A DNA stretch of 64,000 bases from NCBI GenBank assembly GCA_002104905.1, contig MCFE01000086.1:114048-178047 (forward strand), given 5' to 3'. The DNA is from Basidiobolus meristosporus CBS 931.73 (lineage: Eukaryota > Fungi > Basidiobolomycota). Both the position numbers and the translations under genes were made by a program. The notes under the pieces are model-generated. The model worked only from the letters and a program-made list of their open reading frames with translations. It was not told the origin of the DNA and did not search any database. Positions 56,131-64,000 of this stretch are shown piece by piece. Positions within the stretch are counted from its first letter, which is position 1; each line of letters opens with the position of its first letter.

Positions 56131-57711
56131 ATGCCACAGGATCTTGTACCTGTCACTCAATCACTTGGCGATATTTACGCTGAAGCACAATGCGATGAGC
56201 AGAGGTAGGTTGCTTCGATTGCTCAGTAAATTGGTATCACTTGTATCACGGACCTAATGACTACACACCATAGAAAGCGCTACCAGCACCTAATCGAACG
56301 ATTCGAGTCCATCTACGGTGCCAAACCCGACTTCATTGCTCGCTCACCAGGACGAGTAAATATCATTGGTGAGCATATTGACTATGCAGGATTTCCCGTC
56401 TTCCCAATGGCTGTAGATCGTGATTGTTTAATCGCAGTATCTGCAAGCACGTCCGACACTAAAGTGCGCATCTGCAACATCGACGAAGAGAAATATCCCG
56501 CACGTGAGTTTGACTATAGCAAAGAATGCATTGTAGAGATTGATGCCTCGATCCACGAATGGACCAACTACTTCAAGTCCGGTTACAAAGGGATGCTGGA
56601 GAGACTTGAATTGGATAAGGACCCAGTTGGTATGAACTGTTTAATGGATGGCTCGGTACCCAGCGGAGGGGGAATCTCGAGTTCTGCTGCCTTTGTTTGT
56701 ACCGCAGCCATGGCCACCATGAAGGCAAACAAGAAAAGCCTTGGAAAGTCAGATATCGTTCAAATTGCCATTGAATCAGAACGGTACGTTGGAGTAAACA
56801 GCGGTGGAATGGATCAGACAGCTTCAGTAATGTCACAAGCGGGTTCTGCCACATTCATTGAATTTGAACCAGAGTTCAGAACTATTCCAGTCAAGTTCCC
56901 TTCAACCCAACCGGCTGTCTCTTTTGTTGTGGCAAACACGATGGTGACCGCAGATAAAGTGGTATCTGCGCCTTACTGTTACAATTTAAGAGTGGTGGAA
57001 ACCAGCGTTGGGGCCATGTTGCTGGCCAAAGAATTGGGTCTTTTGGATAAACGCCCACAAACATTCAAACAGGTGATGGACATCTATTTCGCCGGACAGG
57101 ACGAGCCAAAATTTGCTTCTGAGACTGAACAATGGATTCATCGCCTCAATAAGATGCTTTGCTTAGTGGAGAAACACATTGTTAAACGTGAGGGGTACAC
57201 CGAATTGGAAATGTCTGAAGCAGTTGGACTCCCTGCAGACGAATTCGCTTCAAGATTTTTATCCAAATTCCCCGTTTCTGCCGAGCTATTCCAACTGTAC
57301 ACTCGAGCCATACACGTCTTCAGTGAATCCTTGAGGGTTGTAAGATTTCGCGATATATGTGAATCCACAAGGTCAACAGCGTCAAACGCCGAAGAAATTT
57401 TCACCAGGCTAGGCGATTTGATGAACCAAAGCCAGAAATCATGTCGGGAAAACTTCAATTGCTCTTGCTTAGAGCTTGATGAGCTGACAGAAATTAGTCG
57501 TGCAGCTGGAGCATATGGCTCTCGCTTGACTGGGGCGGGTTGGGGTGGTTGCACCGTCTCATTGGTACCTGAAGATAAGGTTGAATCATTTATTAGCAGA
57601 GTTAGTGAGGATTATTTCCGAAAGAAACAGCCAGGTATTACAGCAGAGCAACTTTCTAATGTAATATTTGCTTCTCGACCTTCAAGTGGCGCATATTTTT
57701 ACACCTTTTGA
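56131..57711 (+). CDS. GAL1: Galactokinase (GHMP kinase)
   Basis: Exon 1 is 56131-56204, with an in-frame intron at 56205-56273. Motifs SPGRVNIIGEHIDY, PSGGGISSSAA, SGGMDQ and GSRLTGAGWGG. Confidence 0.95.
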
Positions 57712-57834
57712 GAATGGGATACACTTTAAATAAATGTGATATCCAAGTTACTATCCATGATTAGCAGGAGGCAAAGTCAACACATTTGTGAAATCTTATT
57801 CCTAACTACTAATTGAAAAAACACTACAAAAATC

Positions 57835-57851
57835 TAGGGTTAGGGGGGGGG
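57835..57851 (+). repeat. Interstitial telomere stub TAGGGTTAGGG+G6 (probable former chromosome end)
   Basis: Same strand polarity as the terminal TTAGGG array, and it sits exactly at the start of the CpG-free repeat zone. Confidence 0.7.
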
Positions 57852-59151
57852 TGACAATCACCAACAGGTGAAATCTTTGTTTCAATAACTCCAAATAAAG
57901 AAGCCAATTACTAGATGGGCAGCTTTTCTACAAGCAAATAAGTGAAGGGTCATTTTGTGAAAACTTACAAGAAAGATCACTAAGCTAAAGAGGAGTTAAA
58001 ATGGAGTCTAGTAGTACTGGAGGGGTACCTGAAGAAAGAAGTGGCTTATCAACAATTGCAACCAAGTTATTTAGGTATGGATAGGAGGAAAGCAAGAATG
58101 GAGTATAGTAGCTGAGGTAGCTACTCTATAAAGTGGAGGTATATGTAGTGTTGGCAATCACTGGGTCTTTTGAGTCTGGAGATGATGGCTTGCCAGACTT
58201 CTTACAGCCTCTTGGATATTAGCCCACTCTTCATCATTGCACTCAATGGCTTCAAAGATCTTCAATGTCTTTTGATTTTAGGCTTTGGTATATATATCAG
58301 TCTCTCCCTCCCATAATGTGATAAGTTTTTCTGTGAGCTTTGTCATTGACCACTATTGTTGTGCTACAAAGACTGTATAGTGTTCCTCTGCTTTTGCAGT
58401 CAGAAATGGCACAACTCTGGTCTGTGACATTAAGCAATTTGAGTTCCTTGTTGGAAGCAAAGATACTGCATCCTTTACCTGGGATATTGATTGCTCTACA
58501 TGCATTATCTGCTCAGCCTGTCTCTGGACTGTTTCCTGATTTCTCTGGGCAATTGCATATGTACAATTTATTGTAAGAGTTTTGGAGATATTGGAAGTGA
58601 TTGGGAGGCCAAGTAGATTATGTGATTTTCACTTAAGGATTTATTGAATGTAAAAGTAGTATTTATACTTTACATGGTCTTGGCATAGCAAACACAAAAA
58701 ATAGGTTAAGAAAGTTCCCAAGAGCATGTGTGCAAAGCTTGAGGCTGTTTGGACAACTTATCTAATTTTCATGCTCTGGGTAAATATTCTAAGTAAATCC
58801 CAACAAGGAATTTGGTCAGTATTCTCTAGGATTTGAAGGTAATGATCTAAGTGACTAAGTTAGGTGAATATTTAGGTAGAATTACAAATTTTTACAACAC
58901 AATTAGCCAGTACACCTAATTGCCTCATTAATGCTTTGGTATGAGCTGACAACATACATGGTTATCCTTATGAAAAATAACTAGGTCCTATGGGCAAATC
59001 CAATCCAAATCATCCTTCAGGATCTCACAAAGTGGCCATGGTAATGCCAGCAGCATAGAGTTATTGACCATATTCCCAATCTTATGATGTGATTGTGTTG
59101 GTAGTTTGCTGATTTTATTGTCATGTAAAGCAATACACTTGATGGTGCTTT
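57843..59151 (-). mobile_element. Decayed copy A of an unidentified chromosome-end-associated element (interrupted by a solo LTR, truncated by nested LTRs)
   Basis: The 3' end is 30/32 identical to element B (57853-84 vs 63418-49). Its decayed translation aligns with the B protein, and the reading frame continues across the solo LTR. Confidence 0.75.
58569..58899 (-). mobile_element. Solo LTR of the adjacent copia family, with 5-bp TSD CAATT
   Basis: T(A/G)TTGTAAGAG...TTTACAACA, colinear with 59499-59847. CAATT flanks it at 58564-68 and 58900-04. Confidence 0.92.
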
Positions 59152-59285
59152 TGTTGTAAGAGTCTTGGAGAAATTGGCAGTGGTTGGGAGAGCTAGTAGA
59201 TTAAGTGGTTTTCACTTAATGATATATTGAGTGTAAAAGTAGTGTTTATACTTTTACATGGTCTTGGCATAAAAAACATGTAGAA
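59152..59285 (-). mobile_element. LTR fragment 1 (interrupted by the next LTR)
   Basis: Starts TGTTGTAAGAGTCTTGGAG, follows the LTR sequence for about 134 bp, then a new LTR start appears. Confidence 0.85.
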
Positions 59286-59498
59286 TGTTTTAAGAGACTT
59301 TGAAATATTGGAAGTGATTGGGAGCACAAGTAGATTATGTAGTTTTCACTTAGTGATTTATTGAATGTAAAAGTGGTATCTATACTCTTACATGGACATG
59401 CCATAGCAAGCACACTGAATAGGCTTAGGGAGGCCTCCAGAATATGTGCGCAAAGCTTGTGGCTGTTTGGACAACTTATCTAATTTTCATGTATTGGG
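59286..59498 (-). mobile_element. LTR fragment 2 (interrupted by the copia element)
   Basis: Starts TGTTTTAAGAG and is colinear with the LTR up to TTTTCATGTATTGGG, where the next LTR begins. Confidence 0.85.
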
Positions 59499-59847
59499 TG
59501 TTGTAAGAGTCTTGGAGATATTGGAAGTGATTGGGAGGACAAGTAGATTATGTGGTTTTCACTTAATGATTAATTGAATGTAAAAGTAGTATTTATACTT
59601 TTACCTAGTCTTGGCATTACAAACACGTAGAATAGGTTAAGGAAGGTCCCAAGAGCATGTGTGCAAAGTTTGGGGCTGTTTGGACAACTTTGAGAATTTT
59701 CATGTTCTGGGTACCAGGTATTTTGGTGAAAATATTCTAAGTAAATCCCAACAAGGAATTTGGTCAGTATTCTCTAGGATTTGAGGGTACTGATCTAAGT
59801 GACTAAGCTAGGTGAATATTCAGGTGGAAATACAAATTTTTACATCA

Positions 59848-59856
59848 CTCCCACTC
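59848..59856 (-). other. Polypurine tract of the copia element
   Basis: GAGTGGGAG lies immediately 5' of the 3' LTR start TGATGTAAAA on the minus strand. Confidence 0.85.
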
Positions 59857-59858
59857 AG

Positions 59859-62800
59859 CTAAATGTTCATACTGACTAGTCCTAATTTTGACCTAAGATA
59901 TTCAAACTTGTCTCTAGCTAATGGTTTGGTAAATATGTCTGCAATCATTTCATCTGTAGGACAGTAAACTAAGCTAACTAAGTTATTCTCTATAGCTTCA
60001 TGTATGAAATGATGTCTAATATCTATGTGCTTGGTTCTAGCATGAAAAGTTGGATTTCTACCTAATTGTATACATCCTTGATTATCTTGAAATAAAGTAA
60101 TAGGCGTTTTTTGACATAGGCCTAAATCTGTAAACAGCTTTCTTAACCACATTGCTTCTTTTGTAGCTTCACAGGCTGCCATATACTCTGCCTCTGTGGT
60201 GGAAAGTGCTATGGTTGGTTGCTTTCTTGAATTCCATGAAATTGCTCCTTTACAGTAAAGAAAGGTGTATCCTGTGGTGGATCTTCTGTCTTCTAAATTT
60301 TGTCCCCAATCAGCATCAGAGTATCCCACAAGATCTTGTTCTGAGTCCTTATAAGTGCATCTTAAGCAAATATCAGCAGTTCCTTTTAGGTATCTAAAAA
60401 TCCGCTTAACTGCTGCAATATGATCAGATCCATAGTTCTGATTATGTTGGCTGACAACTCTCACTGAATATGAGATATCTGGATGTGTTCCAAGCATGAT
60501 ATACATCAGACTGCTAACCATTGATTGATAAGGAAAGTCAGGGCTTTCAGATGACACCAAGCTCTCTTGATTTGGTTGTGTTTTGACCAAGTTAAGGTTT
60601 GTCTCCATTGGGGTAGCTGCCGGTTTACAGTCTTCCATTTGGTACTTCTTTGGTATATCTTGAATATACTTGGATTGGCTTAGGGTGATAGTCTGGGTAC
60701 TTCTGTTTATGGAGAACTTAATCTCTAAGTAGTAACTAAGTTCTCCTAAATCAGACATCTTGAACTCCTTAGATAGGCTGGATTTAGTTTCTTCCAATGT
60801 GTCTAGGTTATTGGCGGCTATAATAAGATCATCCACATATAGAGCTAATAGAACTGGATTTGCTCTATCTGGCTTATAGTATATACTATAGTCTGCATTA
60901 CTTCTTTTGAGACTCAAGGATTCCAAATAAGAATCTATCTTGCAATTCCAGGCTCTTGGTGATTGTTTGAGACCATATAGTGACTTTTTAAGCTTGCAGA
61001 CCAAATGGGGGTTATCTTGGTCAACAAACCCATCAGGCTGGCCCATATACACGTCCTCATCAAGTTCTCTAGTCAAAAATGCAGTTTTTACATCCATTTG
61101 ATGAATAAAAAACTTATATTTGGCTGCAATAGCCAATATTAATCTGATGGAATTAAACTTGGCTACCGGTGCAAAGGTCTCAGTATAGTCAAGTCCTTTT
61201 GTTTGAGAGTATCCTTTGGCTACAAGTCTTGCTTTGTATCTTTCAATTGTACCATCAGCCTTGTATTTTGTCTTGAAGACCCATCTGCATCCAATTGATT
61301 TTTGGTTGATTGGTAATTTGACTAAGTCCCAAGTTTGATTTTCCATCAGTGCCTTATATTCCTCAGTCATTGCAGATCTTCAAAACTTTGTGTGAGGGCT
61401 ATTTAGGGCCTATTTTACAGTCTGGGGCTCATCAATATGGACTGAATAGGCATAGGCTAAGTTTGTACCCTCATTGATATAGTAATTTGGGCTATTTCTT
61501 CTCTGATTTGATCTCCGGGCATTTGATACTGGAATGATCACTTCTGGGATATTCCTGGGCACTGATTCTGGCTGAACCATGGTTGTAGTCTCCTCTGGAG
61601 TGAAAAATTTTTCATTGTTTTGCTCTGATTCAATCCTGACAATTGGTGGACTTGAGATCAAATTTTTGTCATCATCTGATGTCATTTTTGTGAAAATTTT
61701 GAGTTTTGATCAAACAACACATCCCTGGACTTGATCAGCTTCTTTGCTTTGGTATTGTAGAGTCTGTATGCCTTACTCTCATTGCAGTAGCCCAAAAGTA
61801 TGCATTTTACACTTTTTAGCTCAAATTTTGACTGATTTCCGACCAGTTTTTTGGCATATGCTGTGCACCCAAATATTCTTAGATGTTCTGCACTTGGTCT
61901 GTATCCATACCATGCTTCAAATGGAGTAGAATCACAAAGTATTCTGTTATAACTCCTATTTTTAAGATATACAGCAGTGGCAACTGATTCCACCCAAAAA
62001 TCATAGGATAATTTTTGATCATGGATCATAGATCTTGCCATATCAATTATTGATCTGTTAGCTTGTTCTGCTACTCCATTTTGCTGTGGGGAGTATGGTA
62101 CAGTAGTCTCTTGCTTTATCCCATAAATTTTGCAGAAGTGGATGAAGAGTTTTGAGGTATATTCTCCACCATTGTCAGAGCGTATTTTCTTGATTTTTTC
62201 ACCAGTTTCTCTCTCCACCATGGCTTTAAACTCCCTGAGCTTAGACAGAGCTTCTTCCTTTCTCTCCATGAAGTAGACCAATGTGTATCTTGTTAAATCA
62301 TCAATAAAAGTGATTAAATACTTCATCCCACCTAAGGATAAATTTTGCATAGGTCCACACAGATCTGAGTGAATTAGATCTTATCTTTTATTAGTTTTGA
62401 TTAACCCAGAGCTCTTGAACGGTTGTCTGGCTTGTTTCCCATATATGCAGGCTTCACAGTGCTCCAAATTAGCTGGGGGATCAATTTTCACTCCAGAAAT
62501 TAGCTGATCTTTGATCATTTTGCGCAAATAATCAAAATTGATGTGCCCAAATCTCCTGTGCCAAAGCATTAATGTTTCTTCATTTAAGTTACTTATATTG
62601 GCTTCCAGATATGATGGAATATAAGTTGGCTTGTATAGATTCTGATCTCTGATGCCCAAAGCAATATGGGCACCATTTTGATCAGTGATCCTGCATCCAG
62701 AATTGTCAAAACTGAAACTGAGTCCTTCTGCTGTGGTCTTGCTTACAGAGAGCAGGTTCTTGGCTATTTCTGGTATATAGAGTACTTCTTTAAAGGTCAG

Positions 62801-63404
62801 TGTATGGCTTCCTTCACTGCTTCTAGGGTTTACTTGGATAGTTCCTTCTGCCACTGCATCCAGTGTTATATTGTCACCAATGAAAACCTTCTTAATTGGA
62901 ATTTCTTGATATTGGGTAAAAAGTTCTTTTTGGTGTGTAAAGTGTTGAGAAGCTCCAGAGTCAATATACCACATCTGAGAATCCTTGTTTGTGGTCATAT
63001 TTAGTGTAGATATGAATAGTCTATCTTCAGTTGTTGCAGCATTTCCATATTCAGGCTTCTTTTGCTGATAATCTCTCTTTTGAGACACCGGTCTGATGTG
63101 TGTCCTTTCCTTTTGCAGTAGTTGCAAAATAGGTTGCTGTTGCCTTTGTAAGGTCTGGGGTACCTCCTTTGTTGGTTATCATTGCTGATTAAAGCATTTT
63201 CTTCTTCCTTCTTATTGGCGCTTGATTTTCTTAATTCTTCATCCAGGAGCCTTCCATATACATAATTTAACGTCAAATCTTCAGTTCTGGACTCTGGGGC
63301 TGATACAAGGCCCTGAAACTCGTCTGTAAGGCTATTCAGGATGGTAACTATCACATCCTCATCAGTAGTTGGTATGCCCACAGATTCCATCTCATCTACC
63401 AGCA
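59859..63404 (-). pseudogene. Copia gag-pol, disrupted by frameshifts and stops
   Basis: CNYCKRKGHTSDRC knuckle; WYIDSGASQH protease; LWHRRFGH..CEACIYGK; DLIHSDLCGP..FIDDLTRY..IRSDNGGEY integrase; RYKARLVAKGY..QMDVKTAFL..LYVDD RT; YSDADW..TEAEY..TKHIDIR RNase H. Stops near 62381, 61410 and 61380; frameshifts near 63.1 and 61.68 kb. Confidence 0.95.
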
Positions 63405-63822
63405 GGGTAGGGGGGGAGACAGTCACCAACAGGTGAAATCTTTATTTCAGTTGAAACAAAGAAGCCAGCACTACTGTTGTAGCTTTGATACAAGAGTGTG
63501 TAGCTGAGGGGAATTTGTAGGTAAGTTAACAAGAAGTGATGATAGTTCTTCAGTGCTCAAGACACTGTTCAGTGGGAAGGGGGGTAGCAAGAGAGGTAAG
63601 AATGACTTGTGAACAACATTAATGAGGGGAATGTGATAAGGATTGATATTCATCATAAAGGGAGTGTGCTGCTGCAGATATTGCTGCCAAAGGTCTGTCA
63701 AGTACTTCAGATGGGCCAGCTTGGGTTTTTCTGACTGCAGAATATAGTGAGCAAACTTCTTGACTTCAGGATCTCCAAGTATAGTTCTCCAGCAGGAGTC
63801 AGGTGTAGTGTGGTGTGTTCTC
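63405..63822 (-). mobile_element. Copy B of the unidentified end-associated element, 5'-truncated and telomere-capped
   Basis: Joined to the broken gag through GGGTAGGGGGGG, shares its 3' end with copy A, and abuts (TTAGGG)n directly. Confidence 0.8.
63471..63821 (-). CDS. C-terminal 116 aa of the element-B protein (open at the telomere junction)
   Basis: Stop-free frame RTHHTTPDSCWRTILGDPEVKKFAHYILQSEKPKLAHLKYLTDLWQQYLQQHTPFMMNINPY...LVSKLQQ*, homologous to the decayed frame in copy A. Confidence 0.7.
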   Translation of the reverse strand, partial: RTHHTTPDSCWRTILGDPEVKKFAHYILQSEKPKLAHLKYLTDLWQQYLQQHTPFMMNINPYHIPLINVVHKSFLPLLLPPFPLNSVLSTEELSSLLVNLPTNSPQLHTLVSKLQQ

Positions 63823-64000
63823 TTAGGGTTAGGGTTAGGGTTAGGGTTAGGGTTAGGGTTAGGGTTAGGGTTAGGGTTAGGGTTAGGTTAGGGTTAGGGT
63901 TAGGGTTAGGGTTAGGGTTAGGGTTAGGGTTAGGGTTAGGGTTAGGGTTAGGGTTAGGGTTAGGGTTAGGGTTAGGGTTAGGGTTAGGGTTAGGGTTAGG
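63823..64000 (+). repeat. Telomere (TTAGGG)n, about 29 units, with one TTAGG variant at 63883-63887
   Basis: Read directly; the array runs to the end of the window. Confidence 0.99.

Follow-up and report, generated by a model that had tools for sequence, protein, structure and literature searches.

A young, 5'-truncated LINE copy between a broken copia element and the telomere at a chromosome end of Basidiobolus meristosporus

Introduction

Retroelements that seek out telomeres have been described in insects, Giardia, Chlorella, rotifers and some fungi. The fungal ones described, MoTeR, FoTeR and Cnl1, all use a restriction-enzyme-like endonuclease (PMC12857005). In the literature searched, no paper on the chromosome ends of Basidiobolus was found. 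The window analyzed here, a stretch of 64,000 nucleotides from Basidiobolus meristosporus CBS 931.73 (assembly GCA_002104905.1), ends in telomeric repeats, and a short distance inside them a copia retrotransposon breaks off within its gag gene. What is the DNA that lies between the two, and how did it come to be joined to a broken gene on one side and to a telomere on the other?

Results

Layout of the terminal region

The telomere tract occupies 63823-64000 of the window on the plus strand and reaches the window end. It consists of (TTAGGG)10, one variant unit TTAGG (63883-63887), (TTAGGG)18 and a partial unit, so that the full tract comprises about 30 TTAGGG units, and its G-strand runs 5' to 3' outward, which is the polarity of a genuine chromosome end. 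Directly inside it lie 415 bases of minus-strand retroelement sequence (63410-63824), which we call copy B. A sequence-only reading of the window had drawn attention to a stop-free minus-strand frame of 116 codons that is still open where the telomere begins, and this frame (63474-63821) is indeed there; with a Lys codon that overlaps the telomere it has 117. In terms of the element identified below, the frame is the end of ORF2, the last 117 codons of a post-RT domain together with the stop (63471-63824, minus strand; stop codon at 63471-63473), and its first two bases (63823-63824) are common with the first telomere unit. The 61-nt 3' untranslated region behind the stop codon ends in a run of seven C.

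On the other side of copy B, the copia internal region extends over 59849-63409, also on the minus strand, with the polypurine tract at 59849-59863, pol at 59859-61370, integrase at 61682-62350, protease and zinc knuckle at 62381-63127, and the C-terminal part of gag up to 63409. The 3' LTR (TG...CA; 59499-59848, minus strand) follows, and the family boundary is visible as loose ends at 59499. The match of gag to the Pfam Retrotran_gag_2 profile is confined to the C-terminal end of the profile (positions 109-170 of 172, E 1.2e-10), and this copia has no primer-binding site, no 5' LTR and no N-terminal portion of gag. Further LTR sequence lies beside it at 58571-58900 and 59152-59498, namely one solo LTR with 87% identity to the 3' LTR of copia and two incomplete copies arranged in tandem. 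The adjacent segment 58174-58570 is another repeat, with a depth of about 134,000 and no match among the sequences compared.

Identity of the element

Searching the 116-aa frame against 1.84 billion representative proteins gave six matches, of which two were left out: P0004 is a fragment of 79 aa, and P0006, a repetitive protein, matches weakly. The frame matches the C-termini of the others, P0001, P0002, P0003 and P0005, with E values from 8e-69 to 3e-10. P0001 (655 aa, 89% identity to the frame) and P0002 (354 aa, 95% identity) are annotated proteins of Basidiobolus meristosporus CBS 931.73 from the assembly GCA_002104905.1. P0003 (664 aa, 62% identity) contains a reverse transcriptase domain (RVT_1, E 1.6e-24) and ends at the same stop codon. 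P0005 (890 aa, 35% identity) combines RVT_1 (E 3.5e-22) with Exo_endo_phos_2 (PF14529; 27.5 bits, cut-off 27.4). Searched alone against Pfam, the 116-aa frame gave chance-level matches only. Between subfamilies, the C-terminal 116 codons have pN 0.24 vs pS 0.72 and therefore encode a real protein domain, while among near-identical copies pN and pS are about equal, as expected of dead truncated copies.

The best solved relatives of the family's reverse transcriptase are human L1 ORF2p (E 1e-11) and then R2. The metagenome contig L002 holds a near-complete relative, with a 482-aa ORF1 that has an N-terminal zinc ribbon and a coiled coil, a 251-aa APE domain, and 664 aa of reverse transcriptase and C-terminal region. 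The APE domain is very divergent: it reaches 23.1 bits with PF03372 over profile positions 3-225, just below the cut-off of 24.5, and it has no solved-structure match at E <= 10. In an alignment with 20 other LINE APE domains, the motifs N, Y, GDxN, D and SDH are conserved, and the family has kept them as LNCN, CYLPP, GDLNIPHPEN, RCVDWI and SDH. In place of xTETxL, the motif with the catalytic Glu, all three sequences that extend over this position (L002:1464-2216, P0007 and L004:3311-3694) have LIDV, a change from Glu to Asp in a motif set that is complete apart from it. From its motifs, the family is predicted to carry a divergent APE-type endonuclease N-terminal to the reverse transcriptase.

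A full-length member of the family thus has an ORF1 with zinc ribbon and coiled coil, an APE-type endonuclease, and a reverse transcriptase whose C-terminal domain is conserved. The elements are without LTRs, are truncated to variable extents at the 5' end, have a constant 3' end and carry ORF1 upstream, all of which are hallmarks of LINEs. Copy B (63410-63824) is a young 5'-truncated copy of this very abundant non-LTR (LINE) retrotransposon of Basidiobolus meristosporus. The sequence-only reading was right in calling it a retroelement, since its full relatives carry a LINE-type reverse transcriptase. They also supply the family that this reading had left unassigned; the profile search of fuller copies that it had proposed found the reverse transcriptase in P0003 and P0005. 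The family forms an isolated cluster, whose best matches elsewhere are 25-33% identical and unnamed. A second LINE lineage occurs in the same subterminal region as one of the stacks described below, just upstream of it (L005:9302-11545), and has a 747-aa ORF with a different reverse transcriptase, about 26% identical to that of the copy B family.

The 3' end of the LINE

We compared 17 3' ends of the family, which come from the window, from L004 and L005 as two further genomic loci, and from contigs that belong to eight unrelated runs. One layout is common to all 17: GGCTTCTTT, a first hairpin, AAATAAAGATT, a second hairpin of the form (T)CACC-loop-GGTG(A), 5-8 nt, and a run of four to nine C. 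In copy B, this tag (63410-63466, minus strand) reads GGCTTCTTT, hairpin 1, AAATAAAGATT, hairpin 2 (TCACC-TGTT-GGTGA), CTGTCT and the terminal C7 (63410-63416), and the tags at L004:1558-1614 and L005:11711-11767 have exactly this sequence. In an alignment of 11 sequences, 95.8% of cells support the pairing of the tag vs 40-54% with slid partners, and four tag pairs show compensatory changes on both sides. The contig L001 terminates in Illumina adapter (L001:3826-3852; AGATCGGAAGAGCGTCGTGTAGGGA), and its 3' tag is artificially cut.

None of the copies ends in poly(A); each ends in the C-run, either alone or extended by CCCTAA units. Beyond the C-run, 15 of the 17 junctions go on with TAA, TAAC, TAACCC, TAACCCTAA or TAACCCTAACCCTAA, so that each junction has between zero and three telomere units. 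The register of the 3' junctions is nearly constant, after ...TTA-3', and two junctions have no unit at all. These exceptions are copy B, which continues with TA and then with CCC of copia, and L004:7899, where C7 leads straight into the interior of another LINE. At L004:7899 the tail is joined to the site ...ACAGA-3', which is not telomere-like, and the abutting LINE is 5'-truncated with no telomere unit between. Read as RNA, the tail and C-run spell (CCCUAA)n, the complement of the telomeric G-strand, and resemble a telomerase template. A search of 57700-63822 against Rfam, including the hammerhead ribozyme, gave no match at E <= 1.

Junctions on both sides of copy B

Logan contigs of the assembly's own sample were aligned to 57822-63821 of the window. 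Other copia copies match the window through 63409 and then go on with ATTCTGTTAATTAG... (82 and 65 contigs), and this continuation, appended to the window sequence, prolongs gag in frame as EEMKNLINRITLLVDEMES. Because the other copies match through 63409 and continue in frame, the boundary between copia and LINE lies at 63409/63410, and the sequence GGGTA (63405-63409) belongs to copia. It mimics the telomeric ...GGGTTA-3' end to which other LINE copies are joined. The stretch GGGTAGGGGGGG, which fills 63405-63416, is therefore a composite of copia's own GGGTA and of G7, the complement of the LINE's terminal C-run. It had been read as a separate G-rich seed next to a copia that ended at about 63404, and neither part of that description holds; a G-rich seed made by telomerase was considered as well and is ruled out, as GGGTA belongs to copia. 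On the LINE side, copia is joined at the canonical end, with the run of six to seven C right after the tag, as in every other copy.

At the outer end, four other copies continue as ...GGAAGAGAACACACC where copy B reads CCCTAAGAGAACACACC in the alignment. LINE homology extends to 63824, with an overlap of two nucleotides, TT, with the first telomere unit, and the 20 bases that precede the telomere are GT-rich. De novo addition by telomerase usually takes this form, a short overlap within GT-rich sequence. The earlier description of 418 bp of unrelated DNA from 63405 up to the telomere was thus correct in that a foreign element is present, with the extent amended to 63410-63824, including the TT overlap. 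The element is 5'-truncated and capped directly by telomerase repeats, and its sense strand runs from the telomere inward to a 3' end with a telomere-complement-like tail, all as had been proposed.

A second broken copia was found at L005:16414-18428. It belongs to the same copia family (87% identity), is cut in pol at the equivalent of window position 61535, and has as its cap (CCCTAA)2 plus another retroelement, the two elements being oriented to each other as in the window. The remaining part of this copia was not found in the 16 kb upstream. The capping element (L005:15609-16413) is a different retroelement that ends in GACCCC plus TAACCCTAA and is without the two-hairpin tag; it seems that 3' ends of different kinds can make use of a telomere-like tail.

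Copies, stacks and abundance

Copy B is 95-98% identical to other copies at the DNA level, and every copy has different flanks, which rules out that it is simply part of a larger subtelomeric duplication. The lengths of the 5' truncations vary (67, 935, 976 and 2289 nt, among others), while the 3' tag is common to all. Read joints that lead from 63682 via TA to 63411 and from 63796 via GT to 63408 represent head-to-tail truncated stacks elsewhere in the genome. In the contigs L008 and L006, from another sample, the sequence beyond TAACCC at the 3' end is the same as that with which the contig begins at its 5' end (..CATCCATCCATCC..TAAATTAAC..), and these are therefore full-length copies in tandem, with one telomere unit between them.

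Polarity and end bias were assessed at three genomic places: the window, L004 and L005. L004 starts at a contig end and L005 about 9 kb from one, and both are head-to-tail stacks. All 13 strong tags in these two loci are on one strand, and the 5' ends face the nearer contig end. Variable 5' truncation with the C-run end proximal is among the features that the sequence-only reading had anticipated. The L004 stack also contains units with only the C-terminal part of ORF1, about 33% identical to the ORF1 of L002, each with its own tag and tail (L004:30-635 and L004:1628-2143); these ORF1-only units among the LINEs may be non-autonomous dependents.

In the window, a covariance model of the tag (R1), run over the 64 kb with filters off, found only two tags, at 63411-63466 and 57846-57905, both of which lie on the minus strand no more than 6.2 kb from the window end; the next match has E 0.39. 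The inner one belongs to copy A, an older, decayed and 5'-truncated copy of a related subfamily (57843-58173, minus strand) that has the same orientation as copy B and is made up of a C9 run, the tag and some 90 decayed codons. A single telomere unit GGGTTA (57837-57842, plus strand) links its G-run to the proximal DNA, at a point some 125 bp beyond the stop (57711) of a galactokinase-like gene (56257-57711); copy A thus meets this DNA by one GGGTTA unit plus G9. Over the tag region, copy A (57837-58173) is nearer to the P0008 subfamily, at 80-82% DNA identity, than to copy B. Between copy A and the galactokinase-like stop sits a decayed, tag-only remnant of a third and still older element (57762-57833, minus strand; TAAGATTTCACAAATGTGTTGACTTTGCCTCCTGCTAA), the most proximal of the three, which R1 does not score and which is called from the alignment A5. 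Its position places the oldest fossil end only about 50 bp past the galactokinase-like gene.

Decay accordingly rises inward, from copy B (95-98% identical to other copies) to copy A (about 34% amino-acid identity, many stops) and to the tag remnant, and in L004 identity is 89.8% proximally and 95-97% distally. We read this as an order of age, of which a part could instead be due to differences between subfamilies.

The summed unitig depth over 63422-63821 is about 1.1 million, vs about 100 in unique stretches of the same runs, which puts the number of LINE copies, as a rough figure, on the order of 10^4 at >=90% identity. With so many copies, the LINE family is far more than an occasional repair tool. 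In another strain under the same species label (runs X5/X6, compared with X1/X2), depth is about 430 over the tag-bearing half and zero over the rest. The B subfamily is nearly absent from X5/X6 and has therefore expanded recently in the lineage of the assembly strain.

Discussion

The DNA between the cut copia and the telomere is the 3' end of a LINE, and the way in which it is joined to copia is informative about how it got there. Copia is attached at the exact canonical 3' terminus of the LINE, which argues for retrotransposition rather than recombination, with reverse transcription primed on the copia 3'-OH. This 3'-OH may have been provided by either of two routes: it was a free chromosome end, or it arose from a nick made by the LINE's own endonuclease at the telomere-like sequence GGGTA^. 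We favor, with a probability of roughly 60%, that reverse transcription was primed on the 3' end of a broken or eroded chromosome and that telomerase then capped the product.

The course of events would have been as follows. The chromosome end eroded or broke back into copia gag, leaving a G-strand with the 3' end ...CAGCAGGGTA-3'. The tail of the LINE RNA, C7-UA(A)CCC, would then have paired with this ...CAGCAGGGTA-3' end, either through TA or through GGGTA with one bulged base, and the LINE reverse transcriptase would have extended the chromosome's own 3'-OH, copying the tag first and the end of ORF2 thereafter. Synthesis would have stopped, or the end would later have eroded, at the GT-rich ...GGTGTGTTCTCTT-3'. 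Telomerase would have used the terminal TT for alignment and added some 30 TTAGGG units, and fill-in of the C-strand would have finished the duplex. The truncation at 63822-63824 could have come about either during reverse transcription or by later erosion, which look alike from sequence. Priming on a free end accounts for the absence of the rest of copia and for the outward-facing 5' end of the LINE.

The main competitor is endonuclease-dependent target-primed insertion, in which the APE endonuclease nicked GGGTA^ in an intact subterminal copia (or in telomeric DNA, in the manner of TRAS), and in which a later break or erosion inside the LINE, with loss of the distal part, was healed by telomerase at 63822-63824. 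We consider this unlikely, though far from outlandish. The family has the APE domain with conserved catalytic motifs, which is kept under constraint and would make endonuclease-dependent insertion possible. Nearly all 3' junctions are in one register, after ...TTA-3', and GGGTA is a one-base variant of GGGTTA; the GGGTA^ junction resembles telomeric TTA^G and could equally fit a nicking specificity. A copy number of about 10^4 suggests many more insertions than occasional healing events would yield, and the telomere junction, taken alone, fits any break healed by telomerase. However, target-primed insertion requires an independent break no more than 415 bp from the insertion point in addition to the insertion itself, whereas for a free end one break suffices and no second end has to be joined. 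Stacked copies are separated by 0-3 telomere units vs about 30 in a full tract, which fits very short or uncapped ends better than random nicking of telomeres. For both broken copias, in the window and in L005, the second half of the target was not seen, and tails are sometimes found at sites without telomere likeness, such as ...ACAGA-3' at L004:7899. For these reasons we prefer priming on the chromosome end.

The break in copia might instead have been repaired by capture, through microhomology-mediated end joining or break-induced replication with an existing LINE-plus-telomere end, and without new retrotransposition. Microhomology is present at the junction, between GGGTA and the LINE tail, and the many near-identical LINE copies are possible donors. 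Recombination has no reason, however, to pick the exact canonical 3' terminus among some 415 bases, and the same precise joins at the terminus recur at many unrelated flanks, so that we regard capture as quite improbable.

An assembly artefact, in which copia and a LINE-telomere piece were misjoined in a repeat-rich contig end, is more improbable still. Sequence on either side of the junction is present in very many copies (summed depth of about 1.1-1.5 million vs about 100 for unique DNA), and no read that bridges 63409/63410 was found among the listed Logan records. Against this stand the recurrence of the same junction anatomy in contigs of unrelated runs as well as in two further contigs of the assembly, and the low likelihood that a mis-join would fall exactly on the terminus of an element.

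An endonuclease-deficient Penelope-like element of the Athena/Coprina type, towards which the sequence-only reading had leaned and which shares the reverse-complement telomere tail, the 5' truncation and the telomere cap (PMC8557442), is hardly credible in view of the LINE-type reverse transcriptase (RVT_1 at E 1.6e-24, with L1 ORF2p as best solved relative), the APE domain and the lack of a hammerhead ribozyme.

The broader proposal that this is a telomere-associated family able to attach to broken ends fares better. One-way stacks next to contig ends bear it out, and attachment to a 3'-OH is reasonable; that a broken chromosome was healed is still an inference, as the APE endonuclease is conserved.

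Among known systems, TRAS and SART end in poly(A) and lie inside long telomeric arrays with repeats on both sides. Like the Basidiobolus LINE, these elements of Bombyx and other insects (R1 clade) combine an APE-type endonuclease with a reverse transcriptase and reside in telomeres beside an active telomerase repeat. Their orientation to the repeat is fixed in each family and opposite between the two (PMC10088271). The Basidiobolus LINE, in contrast, has a fungal host and ends in the two-hairpin tag, the C-run and CCCTAA units, and its copies are only 0-3 units apart and can be joined directly to non-telomeric DNA. Its nearest proteins outside the family are <=33% identical.

Drosophila is without telomerase, and its telomeric elements have A-rich tails; HeT-A, TART and TAHRE show variable 5' truncation and are added to broken ends, which makes them "healing transposons". 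They form head-to-tail one-way arrays at chromosome ends (PMC5537684). The one-way head-to-tail stacks of the Basidiobolus LINE resemble these arrays, but the LINE is capped directly by telomerase and its tail is telomere-complementary. Reverse-complement telomeric repeats at the 3' end are found in Athena and Coprina as in the Basidiobolus LINE (15 of 17 junctions). Athena and Coprina have a reverse transcriptase related to TERT, no endonuclease and hammerhead motifs, whereas the Basidiobolus LINE has a LINE-type reverse transcriptase, an APE domain and no ribozyme. The likeness is convergent, a common way of working and not common ancestry.

The fungal non-LTR elements MoTeR, FoTeR and Cnl1 have flanking repeats of the TAACCC type, and their truncated copies outnumber the full ones; they belong to a CRE/SLACS-like clade with a C-terminal restriction-enzyme-like endonuclease (PMC12857005). 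The C-terminal region of the Basidiobolus LINE contains no Pfam domain and, by eye, no C..C..H..C/RHD motif (as defined in PMC12857005). Unlike in MoTeR, FoTeR and Cnl1, its endonuclease is N-terminal and of the APE type. Zepp and L1 are LINEs of hosts with telomerase, in which they are copied onto chromosome ends or accumulate there. PMC10088271 lists both, Zepp from Chlorella and L1 for endonuclease-independent insertion at dysfunctional mammalian telomeres. Both have poly(A) tails and no telomere-complementary tag, unlike the Basidiobolus LINE. What is distinct here is an APE-type LINE in which a telomere-complementary tail behind a two-hairpin tag replaces poly(A), together with its extreme abundance.

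In the window, such a LINE is flanked by a broken gene and by a cap that telomerase made, and both junctions are defined to the base. It is a convenient natural substrate for asking whether a LINE reverse transcriptase can prime on a chromosome end, and how the end is divided between it and telomerase. More tentatively, and at somewhat less than even odds, APE-type LINEs of Basidiobolus may routinely extend short or broken chromosome ends without using their endonuclease, in alternation with telomerase. If this is true, the window would represent one complete cycle of break, LINE addition and telomerase cap, and Basidiobolus would have a hybrid system of end maintenance by retrotransposon plus telomerase, in a fungus and independent of HeT-A/TART, TRAS/SART and Athena/Coprina.
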